A DNA stretch of 64,000 nucleotides from positions 1 to 64,000 of the forward strand of contig NIVC01002752.1 of the NCBI GenBank assembly GCA_002269645.1, in the 5' to 3' direction. Shown here piece after piece: positions 4,923 through 62,752 of the stretch (the stretch's first letter is position 1; each line of letters begins with the position of its first letter). The notes below the pieces were generated by a model. The model was not told the origin of the DNA and made no database searches. It saw nothing but the letters and a program-made list of their open reading frames with translations. The position numbers and the translations under genes are program-made. The DNA comes from Macrostomum lignano (Eukaryota).

Positions 4923-4926
4923 TTAA

Positions 4927-9249: not shown

Positions 9250-22090
<12,841 letters not shown>

Positions 22091-34785: not shown

Positions 34786-35916
34786 TGTAGATGCCGACGA
34801 TTCATTGGAAGAAATTAATTGGAAGAATTCTTTACTAAGAATGAAAAGTTACTATATATTTTCTTAGTGCACTTTTAGCGCAAAAACCCAAAACTTTTTG
34901 TAGTTTCAAGTGTATCCGGACCTTGATATGATTTATACTTTGCATAAATAAGATTAAATCTGTCTTAGATACTACCCGATGACTAATTGTGTAGTAGCTA
35001 GAGTATTCACATAGCCGTTTCCATGGGCAAGCAAAATACATACGCAAGGGCAGGCCTATCAGACTTCAGATTGATTCAAATGTACAACTGATTGTAATTG
35101 TAATTTTTTAAGTGACAGAGAAAAAAATCCGTATATTATCTCTTATTATATAGATGTAAAACGATTCTAAGCTGCATATTGAAAGTACTACGTGTATTAG
35201 TAGCACAAACAATTGCGAAGCTCAGACCGAGACGTCAAACTATCCGAATTAAAAATGATGAAAAAAGAAATAGCTAAGAAAATGAAAAGTAAATATGAAT
35301 AGATAAATTAATCAACAAAAACGGTGTTGCCTTAACTCGCACTATCCGCAATTGTATGACACAACGGGCTTAAGCAATGAACACTTGTTCAGGAGAATTA
35401 CGCAGTTAATGCAGTATTGTTGATCATAAGAAGAAGATTTAGGTATTTAAAAATTGATAGCATATGCTTTTAACTTGAACTATTTAATTAAACTTGGATA
35501 GCATAAAGCACAATTTAATGTTTTGTTATAAATATTTGTCTTTCAAAAGTCTTTTTATTGCACTGTCGACTGACTCCCCAAAAATGTTCTGACTACTTTC
35601 GATCTTGTAATAAGTTACTCCTATCTCTTACTTAAAGTATTAGTTCGTTTTTACTGTTTCGATAGTGCTCAGACATCAACTGAGCATGGAAGCCGTTTTA
35701 TGGACTGACCAGACCTAGAATTTTGTGTTGCATTAAGAAGACAACCAAAATCTTTACTATAATTCCTTTAGTACCAAATCGAGGAATAACCTGAAATTGA
35801 AAAAGCTTTTCTTTCGCCCATCGTCTGCGTCTAAACAGATTCACCTATGTGTACTTAATTAGCGTAATAAATAAACTTTTGGATTCAATTAGGCCTAGTA
35901 AATCGAATTTGCAGAA

Positions 35917-38900
35917 ATGGATGATATCAGAAACATGCAGCGCCGGACACATCGTAAGTAACGTTTCCAAACAAAGTAGGGGGCTAAATTTTGTGAAAGT
36001 ATTAAAAGAGTTTTTTCTACAGTTTTCTATTTATCATCTCTAACGTCTTGCTTCTATCTTGTCAATCAAGTCTAAATGTGTAGTGAGGGTTTGCTTTTTG
36101 GCTTAATTGAGTTATTTGCACATTTGCAGTAACTGGCCTGCTCACAAGCAACACATCTTGTTTGGTAAAAACATGGCTACTTGCCCCATGGAATAGTCAT
36201 AGGAATAGAATGTTTGTTAGTCTGCCTAAGCCATAACCTAAATATATGTGATTAAAATATATTTTAATAAAGTATACTAGTATAGAATAAAATAAATGCT
36301 AGAGAACTAAGAGTTTTTGTTAAATTGAAGAATGAGTTGTTAAGTTCTGTCTATAGTCAGGTAGGTGTCCTGTAGGGTACCCATCTTGTACATCAGAATT
36401 TTTTAGCATGCATTAGGCCTAGCCTTTCATAGTTTATTGGCATACATTTTTAGCATGCTTGAATCTTAAAAAGTTATATTTGAAATACAAAAAGAGGTAA
36501 AAAGCAATTAGAAAAAAACAAATATCTTCTAGTTTCTAGGCTATAATAAAAAGTAGAACACTTCAAGGAAAAAAGTAAGTGATTAAAAGGTAACAGGAAT
36601 ACAAAAAAATTAATTGCATGTGATAATGCTATATTATAGAATTAGGCCGTAGGGACTCCAGTGAGATTACTATAAGCTGATAGTTACACAAAAACCTAAA
36701 ATAGTGTTATTTTTTTAATGAAATTGCTAAGCATAGAGAATGTTTTAAGTAAAAACAAACTATACATGTTAAAGAAAAGTTTATACTTGTTCATATTAGA
36801 TAAAAAAACAAATATATATATAGTTCATGCCAAGTAGTGTCCCATTGAACTTTGTCTTTTTTGTATATACTTGTTTTGTTGCCACAAAAAGTGACTTTGG
36901 AAAGTTAGTTTTTTTGTTAGAAAGCAAGTATTTTAACAGAAAATAACTTTTTGTGATATAAGCAAATATATTTAGTAACTTTTTTTAATATCCTAATATT
37001 TTTTTCTTTTTTTCTTATTTAGTTTGTGTAAAAAATAAAGTTGAATAAAAATTGTGCCTACATTTCTGAAGTTTAGTAAAACCCAAAAAATGAATGCTAC
37101 TCCAAAATGTGATTACATTAAACAATTACATTCTAACAATAATTTCCAGATTATTATTTTATTGCATTTAATAGAAAAACATATAAGAATTCTTCACAGC
37201 ACTTTTTTGCATGCATCTGCCAAGGAGCAGCAGCAGTTTGCTATTTTAGTAGCTACATTACTTATTGTTATTAAACAAATGGTCTAAAAGTGCTAGACCT
37301 TGGATCAGCCCAAGGGGCTCTGCTGATTTATTTTTATTATTCAGTGTTAATTAGTTTGACAATAGATTAAATAATTTTTTAATCAAGCTAATATTTACAT
37401 TTGGGAGTATAAAACATTGCACTTAAAATAGAGAGACAATCTAGATAGAGAGGGTCCTCACAAAGATCTGGACCAATACAGAGTAGTGGATGCAATATTT
37501 TGACAGTTAAAAAATAGAAAATTAAAAATATTGGCATTCATTGAGTCAATTAATTGAATAAAAATATTGGGTAAATGTAAAAAGGACTACTGTAAGTAGC
37601 AGCTTGTTGAGCAAAAAAAATTAGTTGGGGGTAATGCATAGTTTAAAGGTAAAAACCATAAATAAAAGCATATTGGAGAGTAAAAATAGCATATTATTGA
37701 AGTGTAAAAAAGACAAAAGCTGAGTAAAAATGCATTTGGCCTGGATACAAAAAGGCAACGTGTAAATATAGGATTATAAAAAAGAAAGCAGTGTAAAATA
37801 TAGAAAGAATAAAGCAGCTCATTATAGGAGATGATCACAGGTTAGCAAATAGTTTTATCCTAGATCAGCCTCTGTCTACTAACTGAATCACGGGCCCTAT
37901 CCCAACCAGCCAAGCACTTGTCATGTTTCTATATTTAGCAGTATATTTGTTTAAATTTAATTATGCTGCGCTGACATATGACTAATGCTAGGAGAGAGGG
38001 GAGAAGAATCAAAGATGAGAAGCAAGCATTTTTTGGATTTTTTGAATACTGAAGATCAGGGAGAGGTGAAGAGGAATTAAGATAGTAGAGGGGAGGGGAA
38101 GCCGATGACTTTGCATGTGCAGCTATTTAGGGCTTTAAAGAGGGTTAGCTTAGGGCAGGTTGTTGGCCACTTGGGCCGCCGCATTAATGGCAGCTAATCT
38201 GTTTGCATGTCTCCTTCTCAGGCTATCCCATAAGAGGTTCAGCACTGGAGGACAATTTCGGGCTGCCCTAGGGAGCTACACTACTTACATACTACTTATA
38301 AAAATGTGGGTTATTATAGCTTTTCTTAACCAAAAAGGAGTTTTACCACTGCAAATTTGTTTTAGAGGTAAAATAATTCAAATAAATGTATTATTCAGCT
38401 TATTATTGAGCTATTGCAATTGCAATCCCAACAAGTGACCCCTTAAATGCAAATAACCTTGGCCTGCGATGCAAACTTTGATAAAATGAACTGAGTTTCA
38501 TAAGAAATGGTGTCTATTCAATTTTTATGTTTAATAAGCAACTTCACAATATACAATTTTAAGTATAATATATTTTTAAATACTTCTTTATTCTTTTGCA
38601 GATATGAATGTTCAACTGCAGCTTTACTTATAGTATACAATTTTACAATGACAATAAGAATAAGCTTAATACAAAAAATATACAAGACAATAGTGGCAAT
38701 AGGTCTGAGGTGCTAGCATCATTTAAAGGCCAGTCAGGATATCTTGCCATATCTTTATATGCCATTATAATATCTATTGAATAAAATAAATTAGGTCTTT
38801 GTTTAAGCCAAGCAAACATTTATACATGCAGATAGCCAGAATTCTTACTTTTTAAAAAAACTTGAAAAATTCACAATTACACTGGATATAAACCAGCACC

Positions 38901-41900
38901 TGTTGAAGGTGCCGACTGCGTCCGGATGATGACTAAATGCTTGTGAGACTAGCTGAGGTTGTCCAGAAGTTGAGGCTTGCCCACTGTCGAGGCTTGATTG
39001 GCGAAACTCTAGAAATTCGCATCAGGGTGTTCATAGTCGCCTGGTGTCATCTGTTGAAGGTGCCGACGGCGTCTGGGTGATGACTAAATGCTCGAGAGAC
39101 CAGCTGAGGATACCTAGCACTTGAGGCTTGCCCACTGTCAAGGTTTGATCAGCGAAACTAGAGAAATTCGTATCAGGGTGTTCATAGTCACCTGGGGCCA
39201 CCTGTTGAGGTCCAGAAGCTCCGCATGGGTGAAGGCTAGTGACCAACGAAGTTACAGCTGATGCAGACACTTGTGATCGACGTGCTGATGAAATTTGGAG
39301 ACTTGGCAAGGCTGCAGTGAAGCACAGTGCTGATTAACGCACAGTAGTGTACTGAATACACTAGCGCTTATGGGAAAAATCGACCTTCTGGCAGAATCGT
39401 CGAATATTGCGACGGTCTGGAGGGCTGGCGACTTGATTCTTGTTTGAGAAGGTGTGCAACAAAAAGTTAGCCCGTGTTCTTGAATTTCGTGTGCCTGCGT
39501 TGCTCCGTTCCGGCGCAGCAAAAAAATTGTCATGGAGGGGGAGAATTCCCCCTCTTGGTAGTTCTACTGTTAATACATAATGAAAAATAATTATATCTAA
39601 ACTTTAAATCGATAAAGACATAAAAGATTGTCAATGAAAACCACATGGTTTGTCTTAGACTATGTTAATAACCTATGTCTAATTTATATGCTGTTTTATT
39701 TTCAGGTAGAAGGGCAGATTTCTCATCAGCTGGCATATCCCCTGGAGATGGTACGTATTGTACATTGAGGTTATTTGTGTTTGTGTTGGCAACAGTAGTT
39801 GTTAAGTTCTTGTCCTATTCCAGATCCAAAAGAGTTGCTACGCAAAGTTTCTGAAACGTTTCTCAGCCGCAGTGCTCAGCCAGCCAGCACTGTGCGCAAA
39901 GTTCACGTGTGCAATGCCCTGGTGCGAATGACCAAACGAATCAAGGCCAATGTTAGCTCTGACGATCTCTTTTGCAGGTGAGCATAGACCTGATACTTCT
40001 ATACTCGAATATAGTTATATCTACTCAAACTTTTTGTTTCTTCAGTTTATTGCCGGCCTTTTTTCAAGACTGCCGCGAGGTCCGAGCCGCTGGGCTGCGC
40101 TGCATTCGAAAATTTCTCACCGATCAATCCGCTGTCAACAGTTTCTATAAGTTTCATTTCGATCTATGTGTTGCCAAGTAAGCCTTAATTTTGTGCTTCA
40201 TATTTTCAGTATCTCCGAAACTATTGATATTTTAAGTTGGTTTTTTGTGTCCACGTCGCTAAATTAGGATTCTGTAGTGCTGAATTAGGATTCTGTGTCG
40301 CTAAATTAGGATTCTGTAGTGCTGAATTAGGATTCTGTAGTGCTGAATTAGGATTCTGTATCGCTAAATTAGGATTCTGTATCGCTAAATTAGGATTCTG
40401 TAGTGCTGAATTAGGATTCTGTATCGCTAAATTAGGATTCTGTAGTGCTGAATTAGGATTCTGTATCGCTAAATTAGGATTCTGTATCGCTAAATTAGGA
40501 TTCTGTAGTGCTGAATTAGGATTCTGTAGCGCTGAATTAGGATTCTGTAGTGCTGAATTAGGATTCTGTGTCGCTAAATTAGGATTCTGTAGTGCTGAAT
40601 TAGGATTCTTTAGTGCTGAATTAGGATTCTTTAGTGCTGAATTAGGATTCTGTGTCGCTAAATTAGGATTCTGTAGTGCTGAATTAGGATTCTTTAGTGC
40701 TGAATTAGGATTCTGTAGTGCTGAATTAGGATTCTGTATCGCTAAATTTGGATTCTGTAGTGCTGAATTAGGATTCTGTATCGCTAAATTTGGATTCTGT
40801 AGTGCTGAATTAGGATTCTGTATCGCTAAATTTGGATTCTGTAGTGCTGAATTAGGATTCTGTAGTGCTGAATTAGGATTCTGTAGTGCTGAATTAGCAT
40901 TCTGTAGTGCTGAATTAGAATTCTGTAGCTTAAAAGTTGGCTTTGAGTCTTGATGTGAAATTGGTTAGAGCAATAGGAATGAACCAATGGTTAATCCACC
41001 CCCCGCAAACAGATGCCTGGATCTCGGTTGCCTAGACGAAGAGGCTAGCTTGGCGCCCTTATTTCAAAGCGAACGCTTCCAAGCTGTCAAAATGATTCGC
41101 CAATTGACTACCTCTGGCGGCGGCCGAGTCCCAGCTAGTCTTGTTCAGCCTCTGCTCTCCATCTGTCGCTACGCTGACAGAGAGGAGCGTCGCGATCAAC
41201 TGATGAAGGTTGGTATAGATAATATAACATGAGGTTTATGATACCTGTAATAATAATAGTATAGTGCACTGTTTCTGCTAGAAGTAAAATTTCAAAATAC
41301 TCAAATATCCCCACTGCAGTTTCTGGGCGTAAAAAGTCTGTTTTTCAGTGCTGAAATAAAAAGTTAAATGTTCGCAGGAGGGCTGTGTGGGCAGCCTGGC
41401 GCAATGCCTTCGGCGACATCGTCCCACAACCAGCGCGGAGGCTAATCTGCCCATTCCGCTGACTGCTGAGCACATGCAAGCGCATCAATACTGTACTCAG
41501 GCACGCACTCACACACGCTCACACAGGGTGTACAGCAGCCCTGGCTTTCTAATCGTCAGGCACGACAGCCCCCGGCCAATTTTCGTGTACACAAGCCCCA
41601 AATGAATGTGTTTGCGCACGGAATCGAGCCAGGGGTCATGCTGAGCTGCACCGCTCTCATGCAGTTCTGAGTCCTATAAGGAGTCGCTGCTTGCCAGGGA
41701 AATTTGGCTTAACTTGTTGTACTGACTGGGACTGATCCACTAATCATACATGCGCAACAGTCGGCCGATCCGGCCGACCGATTTGGCGGCCAACCAAAGG
41801 AAGTCGCAAAAATGCCCACACGAAAAAATATCCAAGTAGTAGTACTAAGTAGCTGACGAGGCATTTTGACTTATAAGACAGTTATAGTTACCCCTGCCGT

Positions 41901-44900
41901 TTACCCAAAGTTGCGTTAACATGTAAGTCGCATTTTTGGCCAAAACTACGTCACATTTTTGTTAAAACTAAGTCGCATGGCCGACCGAATTTTGGAGGTT
42001 GTGCATGTATGCCACTAATCCATTGCGCAAATCCACTGTTACTAGGATAGGATTTTATATTGCATGTTAAAACAATTTCCAGACCGCTCTCTATCTGCTG
42101 GCTGAGCTTGGCGCGCTGAACCCGTCCCAGCTTGCCGGCAGCGGAGCTCTCAAAACTGTACTGCAAGCTGTACTGGACACAAGCCTGCCGCCCAGGTGTA
42201 CAGAGGCTCTTGTAGGCGTATTGGCGCACCTGTTGAATAGGCCGGATACTCGGCGCTACCTGCGACCATTGCCCGAATCGCTGCATTGCCTGCTTAGCCC
42301 GCTTACCAATCCCACCAGCTGCCGGGGTGGCGACGGCCGCCAGGCCGTGCTGTGCTTGTTCCGCACCTGGCCAGGCCTATTGTCGCTGTCGCCTCGCAGC
42401 CTGGTTGCTATGCTATTTGTTAATAGCGAAGAAGCTCGCTCGGCGCTGGTCGACTTCTTTTTCGATTTATTCCTGGTGCCGAAACCGGCCGCCGGTGTGA
42501 CGGAATTCAATGAGGCGATCAGGTGAGTAATTTAAGTAAATAGTTTGTATGACCTCATCGGACTTTTACATCTGTAAAACTTAACTTCACCCCTTTATCA
42601 CCCATAAACTGTTCAATTCCCAAGCTGTAACAAACTCAACCTTCGCATTCTCCAAGCTTCACAATCCCGAATTCACCATCCCTAAGCTTTACAATCCCAA
42701 GCTTCACAATTCTAAATTCACCATCCCTAAGCTTTACAATCCCAAGCTTCACAATCCTCAAGCTTCACAATTCCCAAGCTTCACAATCCCCAAGCTTCAC
42801 AATCCCCAAGCTTCACAATCCCCAAGCTTCACAATCCCCAAGCTTCACAATCCCCAAGCTTCACAATCTCCAAGCTTCACAACCCCCAAGCTTCACAATC
42901 CCCAAGCTTCACAATCTCCAAGCTTCACAACCCCCAAGCTTTACAATCCCCAAGCTTCACAACCCCCAAGCTTCACAATCCCCAAGCTTCACAATTCCCA
43001 AGATTCACAATCCCAGGCTTCGCAATTCACAAGCTTCGCAATCCCCAAGCTTCGCAATCCCCAAGCTTCGCAATCCCCAAGCTTCGCTCACGATCCTCAA
43101 GCTTCACAATTCCCAAGCTTCACAATCTCCAAGCTACACAGTACCGACCTTTTTGGCTTGCTACCTAGTCACAGCAGGGTAAACTCAAACTCATCTTAAT
43201 TCGCCCCACGCCCTGGGATGTTTGAGGGTGACGCGAACAGCCTATTTAATCATCCTAGTACTAACCAACCAATTTAGTATGCTTATTTGGCATTTGCCAG
43301 TCTTTGATATTGTTTTGTATTGTAACATTAATACTTTCATAGTTGTAAATACATATTTATTCGTATTTCAGGTGCCTAGATCCTAGCGACGATGCCTGGG
43401 ACCTAACTGATGGATTTGTTGCAGCCGAAGGCAGCGATCTATTAGACTACCGGTGCCCCACCCGATTGAATCTATTAGATAATCACCTGGCTTTCCTGTT
43501 GCACCTGTTTGTACAATGCGGTCTGGCTCACGGCCTGTCCAGTTTACTGGCTGACAAATCTTCTGACCAGTTGGGCATTCGCTGCGCTTTGCTGCTTGGC
43601 GAGCTCACCCATCGGAGTCGGCTGCTGCCGGCCGCTCTGCGCTCAATCAGTGCCGCCCTTAGCGCCCCGGCTCTGCTAAGAAATCAACGCGCATTGCATT
43701 GGCTGGCAGCTGTGCAGCGCGCTCGGGAGAAACCGCCGCCGCCTAAAAATGTGCTTCTAGCAGCGCTTGTCTCTCAGGTAATGTATTCCTGCTAAATTAC
43801 TGGTAGAGTTGACAATATTGCCATGGTCCTGAGCCGCTCTGAGCCTTGGTGTGCTGTTTTGGATCCTTGGTGTGCTGTTTTGGATCCTTGGTGTGCTGCT
43901 CTGGATCCTTGGTGTGCTGCTTTTGATCCTTGGTGTGCTGCTCTGGTTCCTTGGTGTGCTGTTTTGGATCCTTGGTGTGCTGCTTTTGATCCTTGGTGTG
44001 CTGTTTTGGATCCTTGGTGTGCTGCTTTGGATCCTTGATGTGCTGCTTTGAATCTTTGGTGTGCTGCTTTGGATCCTTAGTGTGCTGTTTTGGATCTTTG
44101 GTGTGCTGCTTTGGATCCTTGATGTACCTTGCTGATCCTTGATGTTTGGATCTTTGGTGTGCTGTTTTGGATCCTTGGTGTGCTGCTTTTGATCCTTGGT
44201 GTGCTGTTTTGGATCCTTGGTGTGCTGCTTTGGATCCTTGATGTGCTGCTTTGAATCTTTGGTGTGCTGCTTTGGATCCTTGATGTACCTTGCTGATCCT
44301 TGATGTTTGGATCTTTGGTGTGCTGTTTTGGATCCTTGGTGTGCTGTTTTGGATCCTTGGTGTGCTGTTTTTTATCCTTGGTGTGCTGCTTTGGATCCTT
44401 GGTGTGCTGTTTTTGATCCTTGGTGTGCTGTTTTGGATCCTTGATGTGCTGCTTTGGATCCTTTGGATCCTATGTGGAATTTTCTGAATCCTTGGCAGTT
44501 GATTTAAAGGTCTAGTGAGTGGCACTTGGTAAACCACAAAGAAGCGCTGCTTATTCATTAAAGCATCTCGCCGCCCCATTTCAGACCAAGCCTGTCAACA
44601 CTTCCCTGCTGGCTTCCGCGTCGGCAGCTGCCTTAGCCTCCGCCTGCGCGTCTTTGGCTGCCTGTCCAGACGACCCGGACGACTGGGCATGGCCGGAGAT
44701 GCTCGGCCTGGTCCGCTGCTGCCTACAAGTTGACGTCTCTACAGACGGCGGCTCAGGCGCCGGTTCCACCATTTCCCTCGCCGCTCCTGTCGCCGCCGCC
44801 AGTCCGACTGCTCTGTCCGATTGGTTGGCGGCTGCCCGCCGTTTGTGCGCATTCTACAGCCCGCCAACAACCGGAGCTACCGCTGCCTCATTCGTGACAA

Positions 44901-47900
44901 TGCCGCTCAGTTGGCGCCACGCTGCTGACGCTTATCTAACTGGCATTGAGCTCATTCAGCTGATGGCCAAATTGCCAGATTCCAATGAGCTGCACAAATG
45001 TGTCATCAGCCTGGTTGCCAATCTGTCAGCTTACGTGCGCAATCGGCTAATGTCTGCACCTAGCCTATTGGTTAACACGTGCGCCAGATACGCGCCAGGA
45101 CTGATTGGCGCGCTAACAGCCTCGGAGCGCGGCGAGGAAGCTTTAGAGGCGTGTAACGCCAAGCAGCTGCTGCTAGATCTCGTGTCCGACCAGGCGCATT
45201 CCTATTTTCCCAAACTGGTTAGTACAATTCTTGTTTGATCACACGTTGCGATGCTGATATTTGGGACAGAGTGTCAGGGGCACTGACACTGTCAGGGGCA
45301 GTGTCATGGCGCTAAAATGAGTGTCAGGGGACGCTAAACCGGGTATCAGGTGTAAGTGGAGCTAAGAGCTGTACTGTGGCGCTAAAATGAGTTGTCAGGG
45401 ACGCCAAAATGATTGTCAGGAAGAGCTAAAATGGTTATCAGGGGTGGAGCTAAGATGTACTCTGTGTCACCAAAATGAGTTTTCAGGGGCGCAAGAATGA
45501 GTGTCGGGGGGGGGGCCGCTAAAGTGGGTATCGGGGGAGTGGAGCAAAGATCTGTACTGCAGCGCTAACATGAATGTCAGGGGGGCGCTAAAGTGGGTAT
45601 CGGGGGAGTGGAGCAAAGATCTGTACTGCAGCGCTAACATGAATGTCAGGGGGGGGGGGGGCGCTAAAGTGGGTATCGGGGGAGTGGAGCAAAGATCTGT
45701 ACTGCAGCGCTAACATGAATGTCAGGGGGGCGCTAAAGTGGGTATCGGGGGAGTGGAGCAAAGATCTGTACTGCAGCGCTAACATGTATGTCAGGGGGGG
45801 CGCTAAACTGGGTATCGGGGGAGTGGAGCAAAGATCTGTACTGCAGCGCTAACATGTATGTCAGGGGGGGCGCTAAACTGGGTATCGGGGAGTGGAGCAA
45901 AGATCTGTACTGCAGCGCTAACATGTATGTCAGGGGGGCGCTAAACTGGGTATCGGGGGAGTGGAGCTAAGATCTGTGCTGCGGCGCCAAAATGAGTGTC
46001 ATACTGTAATCATGAGTGTCCCACTGCCCCCACTGCGCAGGTTCTGGCTAGCATAGACTACACTAGAAATGGCGGATTCGGCCGTCTACTGCTATCTAAA
46101 GCGTTAAGCAGCGGCGACGAAGACTGCCGACTGTATGCCACCCGGTTCACGACTGTCCTGTTGCGCGCCGATATGCCGTTCTTTGCCAACTGGGGCATCG
46201 AGCTGCTTGTCAAACAGCTGTACGACACTGATCCGACCGTGTGCCAGACAGCCCTAGCCGTGCTAGAAGAGGCCTGCGAATTAGAAGTAAATAAAAATAT
46301 ACTAGTACGCCTTAGACCAGCCGCTGTGCACCTTGGCGATCAAGGCGCTGTGTTTATTGCTAAACTGTGCGGCTTCAGCTTAGGCTTCCGAGTACTGCAA
46401 GAGTCCAATTGGTTTCAGCAGCATTTTGATCTTTGGTGCGACCGATTGTGCAACAGCTATCCTATGCTAGTCGAACAGACGCTGACCGAAGCGCTCACTG
46501 GCTATGAGATACCGCCGCCAGGGCAGGACTTTGTGAGGGCCTCGTCTCGGCCAAAATCTGCGCCAAGGTAGTAGCGTAAATTAATTGCTTGCTGAAAGTT
46601 AAGCAGAACTAGTAGTGGTTAGTTCCCAGCTACACTCGTAAATAAGCTTGCGTAACTCATTCACCCTAGGGAGTTTCCACACCCAAGAACACAAATTATT
46701 TTCACGCATCCGCAGGCGCGTCCTGTTGCCAACGCATCTATTCGGTCAGCTGGCTTTACATAAAGAGGGCTTCGATTTTTTGCGCAATCAATCGTGCGTG
46801 CGAAAATCGATCGATCTAGTCTACCAGCTGCTGCAGCCTGGCCAGAGATTCGATACTGAAGCTGAAATTATCGCTGCCAAGGCCGCAGTGTGGTCCCTTG
46901 GCCATATTGGCAGCACATCCTGGGGCCTGCCACTATTAGAACAGGAGCGAGTAGCGCCCGCACTGGCTATGCTAGCTGAACAATGTCCCGTGCTATCTGT
47001 ACGCGGCGCCTGTTTCTGGTCTCTTTGCTTAGTAGCGGCTACAGAGCGTGGCTGCGATCTGCTTGCCGACCTGGGCTGGGAGGCACTCCGCAGCAATCGC
47101 AGTCAGCTCTATCCTGTTGTACTGCCTAGGCCAGATCAGCTGTTACTGCCAGCTTCTGTTAGTCCGCCAACGACAGAATCTGTTGCGGATAGCTGGCGCC
47201 TATCGCAGGATTCAGTTATAGCCAATGGCAGTCGGACTAGCTCTGTCGGCACAGCGGACGGTATATTAGTAAGTTTGTTTTATTGGATATTTTGAGGAGC
47301 AAGGTTTCAATCCGTGCACCTACCTAATCACTTGGCAACCATTGTTATCTTATCTTGATCGCAACCCAGGGCCGGCCGCACTCTCTATCAGCTGCATCTG
47401 GCGGGCAATATCATTTGCACGTGTCTTCGGTCAAACAGCAGCACCAGACTCGAATTCATCAAAGCAGCGATTTGGTTCGAAAAACTCGCAGCATCAGCGC
47501 TAGCGAATGCGACGGCGTCTCTATTAAAATTGTTAGCAGCGGAGAACACTCGGACGGACTATCTGCCGATGCTCCCAGTGCCGTTGTGGTAGCAGCCGCT
47601 GCGGCCGCTGTTACTGCCGGATCTACCGCTGCTAACCAGCAGTTGGCTCTGCCCAGCTCAGTTTCCACCTGGACTGGCGGTACCGTTCGGGCTCTCCAAC
47701 AGCAACGAGTAGCTCTGACCCTAGCGGCCAACTCGCCGTCATTGAGCGCTCTTGACTCTGCCGCCGTCGGCAGTTCGACATTGTCTCTGACTGGCGGCCT
47801 GCGCGGCTGCGGCGGTCACAAGTCAGCTGCCGCTCTCACTAAACGATGCGGCGCCACAGCTGGCGTGCTTTACCAATGCCTAGCCCTGCCTATCGATCCG

Positions 47901-50976: not shown

Positions 50977-51878
50977 TTGATTGATGACGGACTGACTGAA
51001 CGTTAGCCCTTCTGGTTTGAGGTTTTGCTCTGTGTTTCGATATCAGTGTAGAAATAGTGGAGCTAATAAAAAGGTTTTTTAGAGAGATTAAACGCGCAGT
51101 AAAAAGTCTGACATTCAGAAGTTCTTTTCTGAAAGGAGGACAATCTCAGAGTGACTCGCTTTAATAATAATAACTAAGAGAGACAATGATGGGCGCACAG
51201 AACAGGGGGTACGGTGCTAGAGGAGTGGTGGCGCGCAGCGCAGTCACGAGAAAAATCGATATGAGCATGAAGCATGCAACAAGCCTCCATCTCAGAGTCG
51301 GAATTCCAAAGCACTCATTTAATGACCTGTTCGAAAATAAAGTTGGGCTGAAGACTGCTAGAATTTGGCCCTTTATGGGCTTTTGCGTCGCTAGTTGCTT
51401 TGTTTCTATTGCTTTGAGTTTAGCACTTGGCCATTGTGCGGTTCCAGACTAATTGCAAATGTCAGCGTCATTATGTTTATGAGCCGCCAATAATTTGAGA
51501 TGAGATTTTGTCCGCATCTAACTGTAATTGCGAGCGGAATAAAACTGTACTCACTCGTGCTAACTGCTGGAATTTTGGCCTTTTGTCGGGTTCAGAGATT
51601 ATTTGACATCCTAATTTGGAATTCGATACTCTCTGTTCGGCTTTTGTGTTTCAAGTTGTTTTCTTTCCATTGCCTTAAGTTTTGGAGCATTATTTTAAAC
51701 AATTAATCACCCGTCTTTATTCCCTATCACTGCTCTATCAGGTGTACCCAAATCTCTCTGCCAATAGATCTTCCAATAAGTCACTGCCATGCAATAGAAC
51801 TGGCGGACTTTGAGATACCCAACAAGTAGTATCATATGCACTTAATGCCTCTTCCTATCCAACAAATTTCAGCCCAGA

Positions 51879-52409
51879 ATGACCGAGGCCAAAGACAAGA
51901 CAAATGTGATGCGGGACATCCGCATTGCTAAGCTTTGCCTAAACATCTGCGTTGGCGAGTCTGGAGACAGACTGACCAGGGCCGCCAAAGTGCTGGAGCA
52001 GCTCACCAACCAGCAGCCGGTGTACAGCAAAGCACGGCTCACCGTCCGCTCGTTCGCCATCAGGCGCAACGAACGAATCGCTGTCCATTGCACCGTTCGA
52101 GGAGACAAAGCGAAGGACATCCTGGAGCGAGGCCTGAAAGTAAAGGAATATGAACTGCCCAGGTCCTGCTTCGCTGCGAATGGAAACTTTGGCTTCGGAA
52201 TCAATGAGCACATTGACCTCGGCATCAAGTACGATCCCAGTATCGGCATCTTTGGCATGGATTACTACGTTGTGCTGCAGCGCACCGGTAACCGGGTGCA
52301 GTACCGGCGTCGCAAGCGAAACCGCGTCGGCCCCAAGCAGCACATCGCTCGCGAGGAGGCCATCAAGTGGTTCCAAACCACCTATGACGGCGTCATCATG
52401 AACCGCTGA
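51879..52409 (+). CDS. RPL11: 60S ribosomal protein L11 (uL5), copy 2, intronless
   Basis: Coding sequence appears identical to copy 1 (alternative-frame ORFs in the track are also identical); acceptor at 51871-51872. Confidence 0.97.
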
Positions 52410-52617: not shown

Positions 52618-52815
52618 TCACTGCTATCAGTGTGCCCAATCCCTGCCATCAGTGTGCCCAATCACTGCTATCAGTGTGCCCAATCACTGCTATCAGTGTG
52701 CCCAATCACTGCCATCAGTGTGCCCAATCACTGCTATCAGTGTGCCCAATCCCTGCCATCAGTGTGCCCAATCACTGCTATCAGTGTGCCCAATCACTGC
52801 AATCACTGTGCCCAA
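52618..52815. repeat. Minisatellite, 22-bp unit TGCCCAATCACTGCTATCAGTG
   Basis: 22-aa period in translation; lies between RPL11 copy 2 and OSCP1. Confidence 0.93.
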
Positions 52816-53050
52816 TCACTATACTCAGTCAGTGTGTCAAATAACTCTGCCTTGATAACCCTCAAATCTTAGACAAATCCAGTTGTATTATCATTCAAAA
52901 GACAGTATTTTGAATTTATTATTGATACAAGCACATGCATGTATTGATACAATGATACAATGCCTTGATTGATACAATTGATGCATTGATACAATGCACT
53001 ATAATGTTCCTGCTGTAATCTTCATCAACGTAGTATAATTACAATTAATA

Positions 53051-56000
53051 ATGTCGCAGCACGCCTTGCCAGTACTGTTTATTAACATGGGCGGCGAGAT
53101 GCTCTACATCCTTGATCAAAGACTGCACGCTCAAAAGATTGATAACGAAAAGGCGCGCAAGGTGCTTAACGATATTGTTGGCACAATGTTTAACAAGCGC
53201 TTCATGGAGGAGCTATTTAGACCGCAGGAGCTGTTCACCCGCAATAGTCTGCGCGTCCTGTTCGATCGTCTGGCACACGCGTCCATCATGCGCCTAAATT
53301 CGGCTAGCATGGACAAGCTGTACGATCTAATGACTATGGCAGTCAAGTTCCAGGTGTACATGGCTGAGCGACCGCGCGACCTGTTAATGGTGTGCCTGAA
53401 TCACCTGGACTGGGTGGCCAAGCAGTTGCAGGGCGAGGACAGCCCGGCTAAGCAGGCCCTATTTTGCACCTACAAGCTGCTGGCTTTGCTGGATAAACAG
53501 CTGGGCTACGGTGACTGGCAGGCCATGCGGCACTGTCTGATGAATTTCTTTCAGGTGAGACTGATTGTCTGCTAGCTTGCAGGTCAGGCCTATTCCCGTT
53601 GTAAACAACTAATTAGCGTCTCTGGTCCGACTCTTGTGACTTTTTAACGTCTCAAACGGCTATAATGCGACGGAGAGATACGAATCTACGGCCCCAGAGT
53701 CATGAAAGAAGCGCCCCGTTTCAGAGGAAACGCCTCGAATTGACTCTTTGGGGAATCTTCGACGCCTTGTACCGTAACATCTCGTCGTTTGAATCGACTT
53801 TGAATCGATTTGAATCCACTAATTTATTCCATTTCCACCCATAGGACACGCACACTCGAGTGTCAATCTTTCTGAAGGAGGGCACGCAGGACAATTCTGG
53901 CCGATTTCGCCTGCCATTCGGCGGCCCCCTGCCAGCTGGCTTCGCTAAGCTGGGAAATGTGCAGCTGTACACCAATAGGGGCAAGCCGCTGCAGCCGGCC
54001 AGCTTCTCCGTCAAGCAGTTCAACGGTCAGAGTCGCGAAGGCTCGGCTGATATGCGAGGCGATCGGGGCACTTCGCTAGGCTGCAATATGTACGCTGGCG
54101 GGCAGGTGGACACCTCGGCGCCGCCGACGCAGCAGCCGACTGGCTCGGAGTCCCGGCAGCAGCAGAAACAGCAGCAGCGCAGCAAAGGAGCCCCGACGCC
54201 TCAACTGGTTGCTGCCCCATCCGATCTGGATAGTTATCAGGTTATTGGCGTGTTTGAATTCCAGTTGTAGCTTGTCACTGATGTAGCTTGTCACTGATGC
54301 AGCTTGTCACTGATGCAGCTTGTCACTGATGTAGCTTGTCACTGATGCAGCTTGTCACTGATGCAGCTTGTCACTGATGTAGCTTGTCACTGATGCAGCT
54401 TGTCACTGATGCAGCTTGTCACTGATGTAGCTTGTCACTGGTGCAGCTTGTCACTGATGTAGCTTGTCACTGATGTAGCTTGTCACTGGTGCAGCTTGTC
54501 ACTGATGCAACTTGTCACTGATGTAGCTTGTCACTGATGCAACTTGTCACTGATGTAGCTTGTCACTGATGCAGCTTGTCACTGATGCAACTTGTCACTG
54601 ATGTAGCTTGTCACTTATGTAGCTTGTCACTGATGCAGCTTGTCACTGATGTAGCTTGTCCCTGATGCAGCTTGTCACTGATGCAGCTTGTCACTGATGT
54701 AGCTTGTCACTGGTGCAGCTTGTCACTGATGTAGCTTGTCACTGATGCAGCTTGTCACTGATGCAGCTTGTCAACTGATGTAGCTTGTCACTGATGTAGC
54801 TTGTCACTGATGCAGCTTGTCACTGATGCAGCTTGTCACTGATGCAGCTTGTCACTGATGTAGCTTGTCACTGATGCAGCTTGTCACTGATGCAGCTTGT
54901 CACTGATGTAGCTTGTCACTGATGCAGCTTGTCACTGATGCAGCTTGTCACTGATGTAGCTTGTCACTGATGCAGCTTGTCACTGATGTAGCTTGTCACT
55001 GATGCAGCTTGTCACTGATGTAGCTTGTCACTGATGCAGCTTGTCACTGATGTAGCTTGTCACTGATGCAACTTGTCACTGATGTAGCTTGTCACTGATG
55101 TAGCTTGTCACTGATGCAACTTGTCACTGATGTAGCTTGTCACTTATGTAGCTTGTCACTGATGCAGCTTGTCACTGATGTAGCTTGTCCCTGATGCAGC
55201 TTGTCACTGATGCAGCTTGTCAACTGATGTAGCTTGTCACTGATGTAGCTTGTCACTGATGCAGCTTGTCACTGATGCAGCTTGTCAACTGATGTAGCTT
55301 GTCACTGATGTAGCTTGTCACTGATGCAGCTTGTCACTGATGCAGCTTGTCACTGATGCAGCTTGTCACTGATGTAGCTTGTCACTTATGTAGCTTGTCA
55401 CTGATGTAGCTTGTCACTGATGTAGATGTCACTGATGTAGATGTCACTGATGCAGCTTGTCACTGATGCAGCTTGTCACTGATGCAGCTTGTCAGTCACT
55501 TATGTAATCAGTCACTGATACAACTGACAATACACTAAAACAACGGTATCGCATGTGACCCTCCAATGTGACGGTCAAATTAATGGTCACACATACCAAA
55601 TACTTTGTTTTCTACGTTTATGTTTTTCTTAAATTAACCAAACATACAATGTATACACACAGAGGTCACATTGACGGTCACGTGAATGACCATCTATTTG
55701 ACGGTCACAAGTGTAACAGGTAGTGTCACATTTTTGACGGTGACCAAAAAAAATTGTGACTGTGCTGCAAATTTTTGTAGCAGAACAAAAAGGCCGCCAA
55801 CGTATAGTGGCAGATCATTCAGTGTTGATTAGACAGTAACAGCTTTTAGAATAATATTTAGCTATCAAATAATGTTATTGTCCAATTTCTGTCAGACGGA
55901 CCCCAACGCGGCCGCCCAGTTGGACCTGCTGGCCCAGCTGATCGGCTCCGGGCCCAGACGGTCCGGCGCGTCCGGCTTCCGGCTGAATCTGTTCCGCAAC

Positions 56001-56282
56001 GACGCCGAAGAGGAGGAGGCCGAGTCCGTCGTCGCCGCCTCGGCCGGCCCGACGCCCGGCGCCCGAGATCATCGGGTGTTGAATTTCGACGCCCGAGAGG
56101 CCGGCAAAGGCGGTCGCGATCGGCTCAGCCACGTGATGCGCGACCTTCGACTGGACGACGACGACGCCAATGATGACGGCGGTGACTACAGCAGAAATCG
56201 GCGTGGCGGCCAGGGGCGTACGAGAAGCGGCGGCGGCGGTCAGCGCAACCTGTTGGATCTGATGGACGAGGAAAATGATTAG
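53051..56282 (+). CDS. OSCP1: OSCP1 (organic solute carrier partner 1) family protein, 3 exons, 428 aa
   Basis: Exons 53051-53554, 53845-54240, 55896-56282, all phase 0. N-terminus LPVLFINMGGEMLYILDQRL...RLAHASIMRLNSASMDKLYDLMTMA is characteristic of the family. Confidence 0.92.
54268..55495. repeat. Minisatellite, 16-bp unit GATG(C/T)AGCTTGTCACT, about 77 copies, OSCP1 intron 2
   Basis: Direct periodicity, starting about 27 nt after the donor at 54241. Confidence 0.97.
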
Positions 56283-57499
56283 TTGCTGAGAGGTCTGGGT
56301 TTAATCCGGACTTTTGTGATCTGCTCTTTTTTAATATTCAGAACATATTTTCGGTGTTTTACGATTTAGAACAGTGCTTTTGTGGCTTTTGCTGTCGTGA
56401 ATTGAGTTGACATTCTTGAATCAATAATCTCACTTGTTTTGCCTCGTTTATATTAACTCTATTGTGTTTAATAGATGATTTTTATTGATGTGTAATCGTG
56501 AGCAGTTCAATTGGTTTAGAGAACACTGTGCGTTTTCACAAACTCTATGGATATCTTAGTTTCAGAGAATTATCTATGCTTGTGCTGTCCACTAACAGTT
56601 GCAATATCGTGAACCTGGTATTGTGTTTGCTACATATAATAAATATGTAGATCTTTTTCAACATGAACACTGATCCAGTGGCTTTCAATCAGGTTTTGCC
56701 CTTATACTACGCTAAAGCTCTCTATCTAGATTCTCTTGTTTCTGAAATCCTACAAGTACAAGAATTTAGTGCCTTAGTGCTATCATCGTGTCGCTGTGGA
56801 ATAGCTTAATTGTAGCTCTAGACACTTTAATGACTAATTGATCATAGATATTAATGTTTTGTTAATCACTTTTTATTAGCACGATTCAGGATAAACCGCG
56901 ATATTCAAGGAGAGTTTCAAGTCCCAACTACAAACTACCCAATCATAAAGCATAAGGTTCCATCTCCATTTCGATTTGACTTCGCGTTAATTTTTGCCAA
57001 AAAAGAACTATTCTATTACCAAAATCCGTCCTGAATTTCGCATTATAGTAGTATAGTAGTATGACAGACACTTAGCTTAATTATTTAATACTATGCTTTC
57101 TATTATCACGTATTTTTGTTTATTTCACTTCAATACTACTAGGCTTTGAAAGCGTGATTTTTTTAACTGTGATGCTGTGTGTAACATTCCAGATCTGTGT
57201 CGCTGTTTACTATTGAAAGTTCTGTTCATTTTTATATAATTTTTTTACTTTGTTTTAGCTTATTAAAGCCGCTCTAGATGCACTCTAGATGTTGTTTGTT
57301 TAAATTCAATAATAGCCGTCTTCTGCTGTGTTCTTTATTTCTCTTTTGTGTATATTTCCCTAGTTTAAAAAAAACACAGTATTGCCATGAAATAGGAATC
57401 AGAGGGCTCAGATAGCTAGAGTTGGCCAACATTTTTTAGTAAGACTGCTTGCCAATTTTGTATTTTGAAAAAAGCTAACACCTAAGCAGTACCTGCGAC

Positions 57500-57535
57500 A
57501 GACTGGCAGGCAGACAGACAGACAGACAGACAGAC

Positions 57536-57622
<87 letters not shown>

Positions 57623-57625
57623 TAA

Positions 57626-57666
<41 letters not shown>

Positions 57667-57687
57667 TAGACAGACAGACAGACAGAC

Positions 57688-57726
<39 letters not shown>

Positions 57727-57832
57727 TAGATAGACAGACAGACAGATAGACAGACAGACAGACAGATAGATAGACAGACAGACAGATAGACAGACAGACA
57801 GACAGATAGACAGACAGACAGACCAGACAGAC

Positions 57833-57875
<43 letters not shown>

Positions 57876-57904
57876 TAGACAGACAGATAGACAGACAGAC
57901 AGAC

Positions 57905-57967
<63 letters not shown>

Positions 57968-58005
57968 TAGACAGACAGACCAGACAGATAGACAGACAGA
58001 CAGAC

Positions 58006-58036
<31 letters not shown>

Positions 58037-58226
58037 TAGACAGACAGACAGACAGACAGATAGACAGACAGACCAGACAGACAGATAGACAGACAGACAG
58101 GCAGACAGACAGACAGGCAGACAGACAGGCAGACAGACAGGCAGACAGACAGACAGACAGGCAGACAGACAGACAGGCAGACAGACAGACAGGCAGACAG
58201 ACAGGCAGACAGACAGACAGACAGAC
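57500..58226. repeat. (GACA)n/(GATA)n tetranucleotide satellite
   Basis: About 730 bp of GACA with GATA and GGCA variants, ending about 100 bp before RPL27 copy 1. Confidence 0.98.
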
Positions 58227-58330
58227 ACACTGGGAAAATTAGTAGAGAAAATCGCACCTGGGCTTCCGTATCCTGTCCCAAGTTGCGCACTGATCCACCT
58301 CCACCTTGCAGACCTGCTCCCGCAGCAATA

Positions 58331-58771
58331 ATGGTGTCAAAAATCATGAAAGCCGGTCGCGTCGTGGTGGTGCTGTCCGGCAGGTACGCCGGTCGGAAGG
58401 CCTTCATCGTGAAGAACTACGACAAGTCCGGCTCTGACGAGAGCAGCGGCAAGTCCGGCCAGGACAAGCGCAACTACTCGCACTCTCTGGTTGTGGGAGT
58501 GGACCGCTATCCGCGCAAAATCACCAGGAGCATGGGCAAGAAGAGGGCCGCCAAGAAGACCAAGCTGAAGCCGTTCATCAAGATTATGAACCACAACCAC
58601 GTGCTGCCAACTCGCTACGTTGTGGACACCACCTTCGACAGTAAAGTCGTGAACAAGGAGGCGTTCAAGGACGCCGCGGCCAAGCGCAAGGCAATGGCAC
58701 TTGTCAAGAGCCTGGAGGAGAAGTACAAGGCGGGCAAGAACAAGTGGTTCTTCACCAAGTTGCGCTTCTAA
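58331..58771 (+). CDS. RPL27: 60S ribosomal protein L27 (eL27), copy 1, intronless, 146 aa
   Basis: [25 protein letters not shown], and [16 protein letters not shown]-stop; CCGCAG acceptor at 58324-58325. Confidence 0.96.
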
Positions 58772-59091
58772 CTTTGTGGCTATTGTTATTGTTAGGATTT
58801 GCAACTCTGTAATATACGACTCTCAGTGAGATTGATGAACTGTTCTCGCCTGTTTTAGCGAGTGTCCGAGAAAAGTTTATGGTTTTATTCATTTTTTCTC
58901 CACTTTTCTAGTAAAACAACTTTTATGCGGGATAGGTTGGAAATCTACTTAAAATATTTCAAATAAATTGTAAATTGCAATCCCGAAATGATTTCCTGTT
59001 CTCCTGTTCCAGCCAGTCAGCTTACTGCCGCCCTACGGATTAATCAAATTTGGCTAAAAGCAGATAAGGAGAATTACAAAGACTGAAACAA

Positions 59092-59568
59092 ATGGCCGCC
59101 GGGTCCGCAGACATTCTGAGCCGCCGCCTACAGAAAGAACTAATGGAGGTCATGACAGTTGGCGAGAAGGGCCTGTCAGCATTTCCCGAGGGCGAGAATC
59201 TCACTCGATGGACGGCCACACTGGAGGGTCCCGCTGGCACGCCGTACGAAGGCGACGTTTACAAACTGTCGCTGGAGTTCCCGGCCGATTACCCCTATAA
59301 GAGTCCCGTTGTCCGCTTCACTACTCCCTGCTTTCATCCCAATGTAGACCAGTACGGCAACATCTGCTTGGACATTCTCAAGGAGAACTGGAGCGCCCTG
59401 TACACCGTGCGCACTATCTTGCTGTCCTTGCGATCTCTGCTTAACGAGCCCAACAATGACAGTCCGTTGAACGCGCAGGCCGCCAGTCTGTGGTGCAATC
59501 CGGCCAAATTCGCCGAGAAGAAGCGCGCCTTTCAGGAGCAGCAGCGCAGCGCTTCAACTAAGTCCTGA
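59092..59568 (+). CDS. UBE2C: Ubiquitin-conjugating enzyme E2, UBE2C/UbcH10-like, intronless, 158 aa
   Basis: RLQKELM, SAFPEGENL, FHPNVDQYGNICLDILKENWSALY (catalytic Cys), SLLNEPNNDSPLN; acceptor candidate TTCCAG at 59011-59012. Confidence 0.88.
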   Translation: MAAGSADILSRRLQKELMEVMTVGEKGLSAFPEGENLTRWTATLEGPAGTPYEGDVYKLSLEFPADYPYKSPVVRFTTPCFHPNVDQYGNICLDILKENWSALYTVRTILLSLRSLLNEPNNDSPLNAQAASLWCNPAKFAEKKRAFQEQQRSASTKS

Positions 59569-59817: not shown

Positions 59818-60375
59818 GTGAGTTCAGTAGCAAGGAAATATATATAAACTGTTTTATGAAAATAAATGGTCAGTTAAAGATAATTTTAATAGGTTTAGAA
59901 GTCCGGTAGAGAAATGCACGGTTGGTGTGTTTAAGCTGGTAGTTAGAGTTAAGGGGTTGCAGCCTAGTGGTCAGAGCGTCGGACTCCCGACTTGAAGGTC
60001 TTTGGTTCGATTCCCGATCCCACTAGAACAATTTGTGTCATTGAGCAGGACACTTAACTCTGCTTTGCTTCAGTTCACCCAGCTGTAAAATGGGTGCCAG
60101 CATCAGCTGGGGTAATTGAGGCTGTGTGGCGACCCCCCCCCCCCCAGTCCTTGGACTGAACAGCCGTATGCAGCCTTCAGATGCGCCGCGCAATAGCTGC
60201 GGCTGAGCTGTCGGTTGCACATCTGGCCCAAATAGGGCAGGTGTAATCAATTATTTATTATTATTATTAAGAGCCAATAAAATAATCAATGTATTTTGTC
60301 TTAACTTACTACTGAACTGACAGTAGCTTAAACGCATATGCGCTGAATGGCCTAACTAGTTATATTAGTATATGT
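59818..60375. mobile_element. Copy of the subterminal-inverted-repeat element, interrupted by SINE copy 2
   Basis: AGTTCAGTAGCAAGGAAATA... before the SINE and GAGCCAATAA...CTACTACTGAACTGACAGTAGCTTA after it match the two halves of 62753-63043. Confidence 0.62.
59950..60270 (+). mobile_element. tRNA-derived CORE-type SINE, copy 2
   Basis: A and B boxes; TTGAGCAGGACACTTAACTC...CAGTTCACCCAGCTGTAAAATGGG parallels the MIR CORE consensus; (TTA)n tail. Confidence 0.87.
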
Positions 60376-61465: not shown

Positions 61466-62064
61466 TGTTGCTCTTTCCACTGGCTGGGGCAGTATTCAGA
61501 GGCAGTGACTACGCTACCCTTCTGTTAGCTTAGCCGGCATTCGCTGTACAAATAATCGATTTTTTTAGATCCGTCATTTCATAAATCCAATAGCAATTAT
61601 TCTAACCCTGGAACTGACCTATAAATGGCTTGTATCTATTATACTCCTTATGTATCTTTATCATTACACTTGATACTCTATAAATAATGTATGACTCTTA
61701 CTTATCATTTTATATAATAGTAGGTCCTATTTATTTAAATCGTATATACGCGTATTAATAAAAAAATTCTGGTCAATCCTTTACTTGTTTGTTTTTATTA
61801 TTTTAAATTCTGACAACAAAAATTCGACTCATTGCTCGTGTAAACTGAACATAAAATATGTCGTGCGATTTCTTTACAATGAATAAATATTATTATATAC
61901 ATTGACTGATGCTCCAAAGTCTGCTTGTTGCCTTTTTTCAATCAATTTCTTGTTTTTAATCACTAGTGCTAGGGTTTTAGTATTGATATCTTGGGCTTCC
62001 GTATCCTGTTCCAAGTTGCGCACCGATCCACCTCCGCCTTGCAGACCTGCTCCCCGCAGCAATA

Positions 62065-62505
62065 ATGGTGTCGAAAATCATGAAAGCCGGTCGCGTCGTG
62101 GTGGTGCTGTCCGGCAGGTACGCCGGTCGGAAGGCCTTCATCGTGAAGAACTACGACAAGTCCGGCTCTGACGAGAGCAGCGGCAAGTCCGGCCAGGACA
62201 AGCGCAACTACTCGCACTCTCTGGTTGTGGGAGTGGACCGCTATCCGCGCAAAATCACCAGGAGCATGGGCAAGAAGAGGGCCGCCAAGAAGACCAAGCT
62301 GAAGCCGTTCATCAAGATTATGAACCACAACCACGTGCTGCCAACTCGCTACGTTGTGGACACCACCTTCGACAGTAAAGTCGTGAACAAGGAGGCGTTC
62401 AAGGACGCCGCGGCCAAGCGCAAGGCAATGGCACTTGTCAAGAGCCTGGAGGAGAAGTACAAGGCGGGCAAGAACAAGTGGTTCTTCACCAAGTTGCGCT
62501 TCTAA
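62065..62505 (+). CDS. RPL27: 60S ribosomal protein L27 (eL27), copy 2, intronless
   Basis: Same protein as copy 1; one synonymous difference seen (TCA vs TCG at codon 3); acceptor at 62058-62059; AATAAA at 62560. Confidence 0.96.
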
Positions 62506-62752
62506 CTTAATTGACTGGCTGATTTATTGACAAATTGTTGTTTGCTCCAGAGGGCTCAGAATAAAATTGATTTGTAAAAGCAGCGTTGATAACTGTTGGC
62601 TTCGACTGGATTGAAATGCTTCTTTTGGAAAGAAAGGCTTCCTTCCGCGTTTCGACTTCTTTGCTAACGTTAGCCGATAGTTAGCAATAAAAACCCTAGT
62701 TTCGATCACAGATACTAAAATAACTAGATGGGCCCACTGAGGCAAATATACT

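Follow-up and report, generated by a model that had tools for sequence, protein, structure and literature searches.

Spliced-leader operons and the Rictor-RPL27b locus

The closest described system is that of the flatworm Macrostomum lignano itself, in which spliced-leader (SL) trans-splicing and its operons are already documented genome-wide (Wudarski et al. 2017, PMC5730564; Ustyantsev & Berezikov 2021, PMC8629364). The locus studied here, seven genes in the order Rictor, RPL11a, RPL11b, OSCP1, RPL27a, UBE2C and RPL27b, lies in the first 64,000 nucleotides of the M. lignano contig NIVC01002752.1 (GCA_002269645.1; this whole stretch is called the window below), and it is an ordinary example of that system, with species, assembly, SL and acceptor motif being identical. 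M. lignano has one SL of 35 nt, CGGTCTCTTACTGCGAAGACTCAATTTATTGCATG, which terminates in AUG and is joined at acceptors of the motif [T/C]TNCAG (PMC8629364, PMC5730564). About 30% of the genes are trans-spliced and about 15% were assigned to operons, while about 60% of the trans-spliced genes are situated outside operons (PMC8629364). The trans-spliced genes are enriched in conserved genes (PMC8629364, PMC5730564). Operons were defined as trans-spliced neighbours on one strand which, once repeats are subtracted, are separated by less than 1 kb; these have an intergenic mode of about 100 bp and comprise at most nine genes, repeats inflate their spacers, and the assembled transcriptional units often break in spacers (PMC8629364). 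The gene boundaries of the Mlig_3_7 assembly were cut at SL-read peaks (TBONE) and poly(A) sites (PMC5730564).

The SL2-type operons of Caenorhabditis elegans are alike in having a polycistronic pre-mRNA and an upstream 3' end at most about 100 nt from the downstream acceptor. Housekeeping and growth genes, including those of ribosomal proteins, are frequent in them. In contrast, M. lignano has no SL2-type leader dedicated to downstream cistrons, and most spacers in the present cluster are 5 to 25 times longer. In the tunicates Ciona and Oikopleura, SL trans-splicing also resolves short-spacer operons and translation genes are heavily trans-spliced, whereas the phylum and the SL are different and the operons are often nearly spacer-free. 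The polycistrons of parasitic flatworms resemble the M. lignano system in that their SL also terminates in AUG, that bicistronic pairs are separated by at most 300 bp, as in Op8 (cytochrome b-c1 subunit 7 and enolase), and that chimeric gene models occur (PMC12582326). Their gene content differs, and the RPL27-UBE2C adjacency was not seen around UBE2C of Hymenolepis.

The locus is best read, with a probability of roughly 65%, as a group of co-oriented genes which obtain the single SL at AGs near their start codons and which include one likely bicistronic pair, RPL27a-UBE2C. The first-pass annotation of the window had proposed a single growth operon of all seven genes, joining an mTORC2 scaffold (Rictor), two proteins of the 60S subunit and the E2 enzyme of the anaphase-promoting complex/cyclosome (APC/C). 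Its assignment of the layout to the SL trans-splicing type was supported, M. lignano being an SL-bearing flatworm with deposited coding sequences (CDSs) from the two paralogous loci that start at the RPL11 and RPL27 acceptors. The single seven-gene operon was found to be unsupported, considering the five gaps of 0.6-2.5 kb compared with the mode of about 100 bp, the differing locus-tag prefixes and the lack of synteny in the sampled relatives.

Gene identities and acceptors ahead of the start codons

The seven consecutive same-strand genes and their names were borne out by Pfam and by alignments to PDB structures. Pfam matches were obtained with RPL11/uL5 and RPL27/eL27 (two of each), UQ_con, Oscp1 (E 3e-54), RICTOR_M, RasGEF_N_2 and RICTOR_V. 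The E2 protein scored about 200 bits with the clam E2-C and human UBE2C structures and at most about 128 bits with other E2s of the PDB, and the NCBI UBE2C protein, encoded from 59092, was identical to the window product. The RPL11 open reading frame (ORF) shared 99% identity with the M. lignano protein PAA92927. The Rictor ATG at 35917 opens one continuous frame over four spliced exons, and the spliced N-terminus aligned to human RICTOR from residue ~31 (PDB RICTOR alignment, E 2.6e-51); exon 1 of Rictor and its acceptor are predicted from the DNA sequence alone. A possible 34-nt mini-intron (GTGAGT...TTTGCAG) was noticed at 48510-48543, across the presumed Rictor stop codon. If it were spliced, Rictor would terminate nine codons further on and its C-terminus would be altered.

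All seven genes are on the + strand with no opposite-strand gene between them, and both flanks of the cluster are minus-strand, with a kinase exon at 10.4 kb and a RhoGEF downstream. Since two of the seven genes are tandem duplicates, only five independent units are present, for which the co-orientation by itself gives P ~0.06. The region occurs in triplicate in the Mlig_3_7 assembly, in NIVC01002752.1 (the window, L001), NIVC01000623.1 (L002) and NIVC01000037.1 (L003), the deposited L001 locus agreeing with the window at every base. The gene order of L002 and L003 matches that of the window, and the identity is 94-98% along the whole length, spacers included. A partial genome duplication is known for the DV1 line of M. 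lignano (PMC8629364), and the three-copy state of the region fits it.

Splice acceptors had been annotated 2, 6, 5 and ~80 nt ahead of the ATGs of Rictor, RPL11, RPL27 and UBE2C, respectively, and all of these are present in the sequence. The Rictor acceptor, tttgcag, is followed by an AA leader, and both RPL11 copies have tttcag followed by the leader CCCAGA. Acceptors of the [T/C]TNCAG type were detected before six of the seven genes (AG ends 35914, 50439, 51872, 58311, 62044 and 59012). The motif ends at most 25 nt upstream of the ATG in three of the five independent families, compared with a share of about 5% among all window ATGs (binomial P ~0.001). OSCP1 had no motif-type acceptor; the sole candidate, acgtag, ends at 53033, 17 nt before the ATG.

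The RPL27 genes have tandem acceptors, TTGCAG at -19 in RPL27a and at -20 in RPL27b, and CCGCAG at -5 in both, the latter followed by CAATA and the ATG. Both AGs were found in all six RPL27 copies of the three loci, the upstream TTGCAG being closer to the motif. In UBE2C, the annotated ttccag, 79 nt 5' of the ATG, does exist but is unique to the window copy, L002 and L003 having ATG at that place. The AG common to the three loci is that at 59015-16, 4 nt further downstream, where the site in L002 and L003 reads GCCAG.

The deposited gene models coincide with these sites. The RPL11 protein P0001 (L003) is 5'-partial and starts with PRMTEAK, corresponding to the CCC immediately 3' of TTTCAG, and the independent UniProt RPL11 model P0123, which stems from the older ML2 assembly, starts likewise. 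The deposited CDSs of the RPL27 paralogues P0126 and P0127 are also 5'-partial and start with LLPAAIM, immediately 3' of TTGCAG at -19/-20, which places the start of the RPL27 transcript at the upstream acceptor. The AG at 5 nt, which the first-pass annotation had chosen, is present, but the deposited CDS start points to the site at 19-20 nt instead. As the 5'-partial CDSs start directly after acceptors, trans-splicing of the cluster genes is well supported, and SL addition at the individual sites of the window copy is predicted. The public annotation of M. lignano already incorporates trans-splicing. Exact-protein look-ups gave no match for RPL11 and RPL27, and UBE2C matched only two genome contigs and no transcript contig. 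The locus tags and gene names of the cluster gave no match in a text search of papers and supplements.

The ribosomal-protein genes of many animals carry a first intron near the ATG, and the AGs might alternatively be cis-splice acceptors of 5'-untranslated region (5'-UTR) introns, with a non-coding first exon upstream and no SL involved. GT[GA]AG donors occur in the OSCP1-RPL27a, RPL27a-UBE2C and UBE2C-RPL27b gaps (1-3 per gap), and flatworm acceptors often serve both cis- and trans-splicing (PMC12582326). However, the 1.9-kb and 0.9-kb gaps before the RPL11 copies are devoid of a consensus donor, and the 5'-partial CDSs begin exactly at the acceptor, as SL-trimmed transcripts do, while a cis-spliced leader exon would extend the models 5'. 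Together with the documented trans-splicing of 30% of M. lignano genes (PMC8629364), this makes the cis-splicing explanation very improbable.

The ability of flatworm SL AUGs to act as initiators is established according to Cheng et al. 2006, as cited in PMC12582326. The terminal AUG of the SL is predicted to be in frame when joined to RPL11 (MPRM...) and out of frame on Rictor, 2 nt ahead of the Rictor AUG. On UBE2C and RPL27 it would make short upstream ORFs. The RPL27 acceptors enclose a C indel of 1 nt (58318 and 62051 in the window, and the equivalents in L002 and L003) that varies between the copies, six in all. If the SL AUG is joined at the -20 site, the indel would decide between a 7-codon upstream ORF terminating in TAATG and a long overlapping ORF that is out of frame, the latter being expected in the copies with the shorter C-run.

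Spacers and possible co-transcription

The six stop-to-next-gene gaps were determined to be 241-2496 nt, in accordance with the ~0.24-2.5 kb annotated earlier, and five of them are 0.6-2.5 kb. With the spacer cut-off used for parasitic flatworms, 300 bp or less (PMC12582326), RPL27a-UBE2C is the only qualifying pair. Under the 1-kb rule of M. lignano, the RPL11a-RPL11b (896 nt or less) and RPL11b-OSCP1 (641 nt or less) gaps also qualify, neither being within 300 bp, and UBE2C-RPL27b is too long even after the subtraction of the detected repeats (~1.5-1.8 kb). The neighbours outside the pair may count as operon members under the <1 kb rule, but they probably also have own or internal promoters. 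Rictor, RPL11a, RPL11b, OSCP1 and RPL27b would be trans-spliced genes separated by repeat-rich spacers of 0.6-2.5 kb.

Judged from its nucleotide sequence, only RPL27a-UBE2C has true operon geometry. The AATAAA at 58962-58967 was correctly placed by the first-pass annotation, 45 nt before the AG of the window copy; the spacer keeps AATAAA, a 19-nt pyrimidine tract and an AG in all three loci, and the distance from AATAAA to the conserved UBE2C acceptor is 49 nt in each of them. RPL27a and UBE2C are most likely a true bicistronic unit, with co-transcription suggested by this arrangement. RNA polymerase II would pass through RPL27a into UBE2C, cleavage and polyadenylation at the AATAAA would free the RPL27a mRNA, and SL trans-splicing at the acceptor ~45-49 nt downstream would cap and free the UBE2C mRNA.

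Several observations weigh against this reading of the locus. The search for an annotated Rictor N-terminus showed that exon 1 is contained in no deposited protein, and the RPL11b model of the window starts 6 nt past the ATG, not at the acceptor. The locus-tag prefixes differ, being Mlig029105 for RPL11, Mlig002990 for RPL27 and Mlig034228 for UBE2C. Genes cut from one assembled transcriptional unit carry a common prefix (Supplementary Fig. 5a), so the deposited assembly did not put these three families in one unit. The AT-rich sequence at 58940-58975, which includes the AATAAA, could in principle house a compact UBE2C promoter. One consensus donor, GTGAG at 58826, is located inside the RPL27a 3'-UTR, in the 240-nt gap that had been described as having no strong donor. 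Finally, the depletion of GT[GA]AG donors on the + strand of the first three gaps, between Rictor and OSCP1 (none observed vs 5.2 expected, P ~0.02), is not strand-specific, as the minus strand of the same gaps has 1 donor; it is therefore of little weight and was dropped as an argument for outron selection.

According to an opposite explanation, there is no operon, each gene, UBE2C too, is transcribed with a short outron from a promoter of its own, trans-splicing does no more than trim monocistronic pre-mRNAs, and the clustering results from tandem duplication and chance. The high share of trans-spliced M. lignano genes outside operons, the P value of the five-unit co-orientation, the unlike locus-tag prefixes and the lineage-specific adjacencies are in line with this, as is the AT-rich TATA-like sequence TTAAAATATTTCAAATAAAT ~50-65 nt 5' of the UBE2C acceptor. 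On the other hand, the 241-nt spacing would put the UBE2C promoter within the 3'-UTR of RPL27a, with the AATAAA 45-49 nt from the acceptor, and chimeric gene models cover the RPL27a-UBE2C pair. The spacing of the pair is also kept in all three loci of a repeat-rich 764-Mb genome. For a deep conservation of the spacers in general, the comparison of the loci has no power, as they are 94-98% identical along their whole length. We regard the absence of any operon as unlikely and the bicistronic pair as the better account.

The proposal of the first-pass annotation, in which all seven genes form one ~26 kb polycistronic operon with a promoter 5' of Rictor, selected for the co-regulation of mTORC2, the 60S subunit and the APC/C E2, agrees with the unbroken co-orientation between opposite-strand genes at both ends, with the acceptors before six of the seven genes and with the first three gaps being without consensus donors. 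M. lignano operons reach nine genes and repeat-inflated spacers are known (PMC8629364). Chimeric ML2 gene models (P0123, P0125, P0129) join RPL27-UBE2C-RPL27, RPL11-RPL11 and OSCP1-RPL27-UBE2C-RPL27, the last extending from OSCP1 to RPL27b, and such models were interpreted as the footprint of polycistronic precursors in a 2025 flatworm study (PMC12582326). In contrast, the gaps of 0.9-2.5 kb are far from the ~100 bp mode, UBE2C-RPL27b being too long even net of the detected repeats, the three gene families carry different prefixes, and only five units are independent, two genes being duplicates. The adjacencies are absent from the other sampled flatworms, and the mRNA abundances of Rictor and the ribosomal proteins are expected to be orders of magnitude apart, which would favour separate or internal promoters. 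A functional link between Rictor and the ribosome is speculative. A selected seven-gene operon is improbable for these reasons, and a set of trans-spliced genes with one pair is preferred.

NCBI models at L002 9222-13326 and at L003 10001-11973 and 17661-21618 link the duplicates in an intron-like manner, the RPL27s across UBE2C and the RPL11s together. The joins most likely arose as artefacts of mapping, given the near identity of the duplicates.

A single transcription unit spanning all 26 kb between Rictor and RPL27b, with the very different mRNA levels set entirely post-transcriptionally, is very improbable. If true, the unit would be among the largest M. lignano operons, with highly expressed ribosomal-protein cistrons 3' of a low-abundance mTORC2 scaffold, and the ribosomal-protein gene-conversion tracts that start at or near the trans-splice acceptor would hint at a homogenisation guided by the processed-mRNA boundary.

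Duplication, neighbourhood and significance

The RPL11a region 50432-51008 is identical to the RPL11b region 51865-52441 over 577 nt (100%), and the 60 nt further upstream are only ~75% identical. In the comparison of 50374-51008 with 51804-52441, the RPL11b-type tract before RPL11a was progressively longer in L002 and L003. The varying 5' boundary of the tract among the three loci indicates an ongoing gene conversion of the RPL11 copies. RPL27a and RPL27b differ by one synonymous substitution in 441 nt and share flanks of ~74 nt upstream and 6 nt downstream, the homology of RPL27b to RPL27a being confined to 61992-62510. As the duplicates share the CDS and only ~72 nt upstream, they have no duplicated promoter in common beyond ~72 nt. 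In the preferred reading, the cluster was shaped by tandem duplication and continuing conversion of the ribosomal-protein genes rather than selected as a growth regulon.

A comparison of synteny in related species, which had been suggested as a check of the operon, revealed that the two adjacencies examined, those of RPL11 and UBE2C, are not shared with the sampled parasitic flatworms. Neither OSCP1 nor Rictor was found at 10 kb or less from RPL11 in Clonorchis sinensis and Cichlidogyrus casuarinus, and in Hymenolepis diminuta UBE2C had no RPL27 within that distance. There is no sign of an old "growth" arrangement kept by selection. The possibility that the intronless RPL11, RPL27 and UBE2C are retrogenes carrying SL remnants was also considered and rejected: only a 9-nt SL match was found, situated 30 nt 5' of the RPL11a acceptor, and 24 such 9-mers occur in the window.

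The coordinates of the genes, spacers and other features are presented in Table 1.

Table 1. Features of the Rictor-RPL27b cluster and its surroundings in the window (CDS, coding sequence; SINE, short interspersed nuclear element; TRF, Tandem Repeats Finder).
Feature	Position	Length	Strand	Remarks
Rictor	35915..48530		+	Pfam domains; ATG 35917; acceptor ends 35914; C-terminal ORF stops at 48530
Rictor 5' exons (predicted)	35915-35953, 39706-39750, 39824-39977, 40046-40177		+	canonical AG/GT
RPL11a (uL5)	50434..50976		+	acceptor TTTCAG 50434-50439; leader CCCAGA, 6 nt; intronless CDS 50446-50976
RPL11b, tandem duplicate	51867..52409		+	acceptor TTTCAG 51867-51872; CDS 51879-52409
OSCP1, multi-exon	53034..56282		+	ATG 53051, stop 56282; Pfam Oscp1; NCBI model 428 aa
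16-mer array within OSCP1 intron	54269-55494
RPL27a (eL27)	58306..58771		+	acceptors end 58311 and 58325; intronless CDS 58331-58771
RPL27a-UBE2C intercistronic region	58962..59016		+	AATAAA 58962-58967; pyrimidine tract TTTCCTGTTCTCCTGTTCC; AG 59011-12; AG 59015-16
UBE2C	59017..59568		+	leader 75-79 nt; intronless CDS 59092-59568
RPL27b, duplicate	62039..62505		+	acceptors end 62044 and 62059; CDS 62065-62505; AATAAA at 62560
Rictor-RPL11a spacer		1909 nt		0.5 or 1.35 kb past candidate poly(A) signals
RPL11a-RPL11b spacer		896 nt
RPL11b-OSCP1 spacer		641 nt		no canonical AATAAA/ATTAAA
OSCP1-RPL27a spacer		2029 nt		731 nt is (GACA)n; ~0.9 kb without (GACA)n if AATAAA 56638 is used
RPL27a-UBE2C spacer		241 nt		stop to acceptor; AATAAA 45-49 nt from AG
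UBE2C-RPL27b spacer		2476 nt		SINE and dispersed repeats; ~1.5-1.8 kb after their subtraction
(GACA)n microsatellite	57497..58227			182 copies (TRF); ~1/3 of the OSCP1-RPL27a gap
tRNA-like SINE with (TTA)n tail	59947..60260		+	within the UBE2C-RPL27b gap; second copy 4616-4925
Protein-kinase-domain exon	10389-10709		minus	cAMP-dependent kinase catalytic subunit-like

The spacers contain several repeats. In the Rictor-RPL11a spacer, an element resembling a miniature inverted-repeat transposable element was noticed at ~49304-49490, with the terminal inverted repeats CCGTATGCAGAAAGC ... GCTTTCTGCATACGG. Neither AATAAA nor ATTAAA was present at 52410-53050, from the RPL11b stop up to the start codon of OSCP1, so the 3'-end signal of RPL11b is non-canonical or situated elsewhere; nine copies of a 22-mer are arrayed at 52617-52820 in the same spacer. 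The SINE at 59947-60260 has an A/B-box-like sequence and is co-oriented with the genes, and ARAGORN called no tRNA there. It apparently splits a dispersed repeat 3' of UBE2C (59821-59901 and 60301-60376), which is also found ~275 nt past RPL27b (62779-63042) and, inverted, inside the kinase gene (9899-10285).

Immediately 5' of Rictor, degenerate ORFs similar to the reverse transcriptase of long interspersed nuclear elements were observed on the + strand at 33300-34700, which Pfam did not recognise at E<0.01. Rfam, ARAGORN and the search with the SL sequence detected no RNA gene in the window, an SL RNA gene included. At 22388-22401, in AT-rich surroundings, 14 nt (CAATTTATTGCATG) match the 3' end of the SL exactly. 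The SL RNA donor GTAAG does not follow there and the sequence further 5' is unlike the SL; the match may be a relic or due to chance.

As most trans-spliced M. lignano genes are monocistronic, co-orientation and acceptors are insufficient to define an operon, and this calls for caution. The importance of the locus beyond annotation is small. It illustrates flatworm SL trans-splicing with textbook clarity, the acceptor-before-ATG signals being readable from the raw sequence, and the processing of operons could be studied on the tight RPL27-UBE2C pair as a compact test case in M. lignano, for which transgenesis exists.

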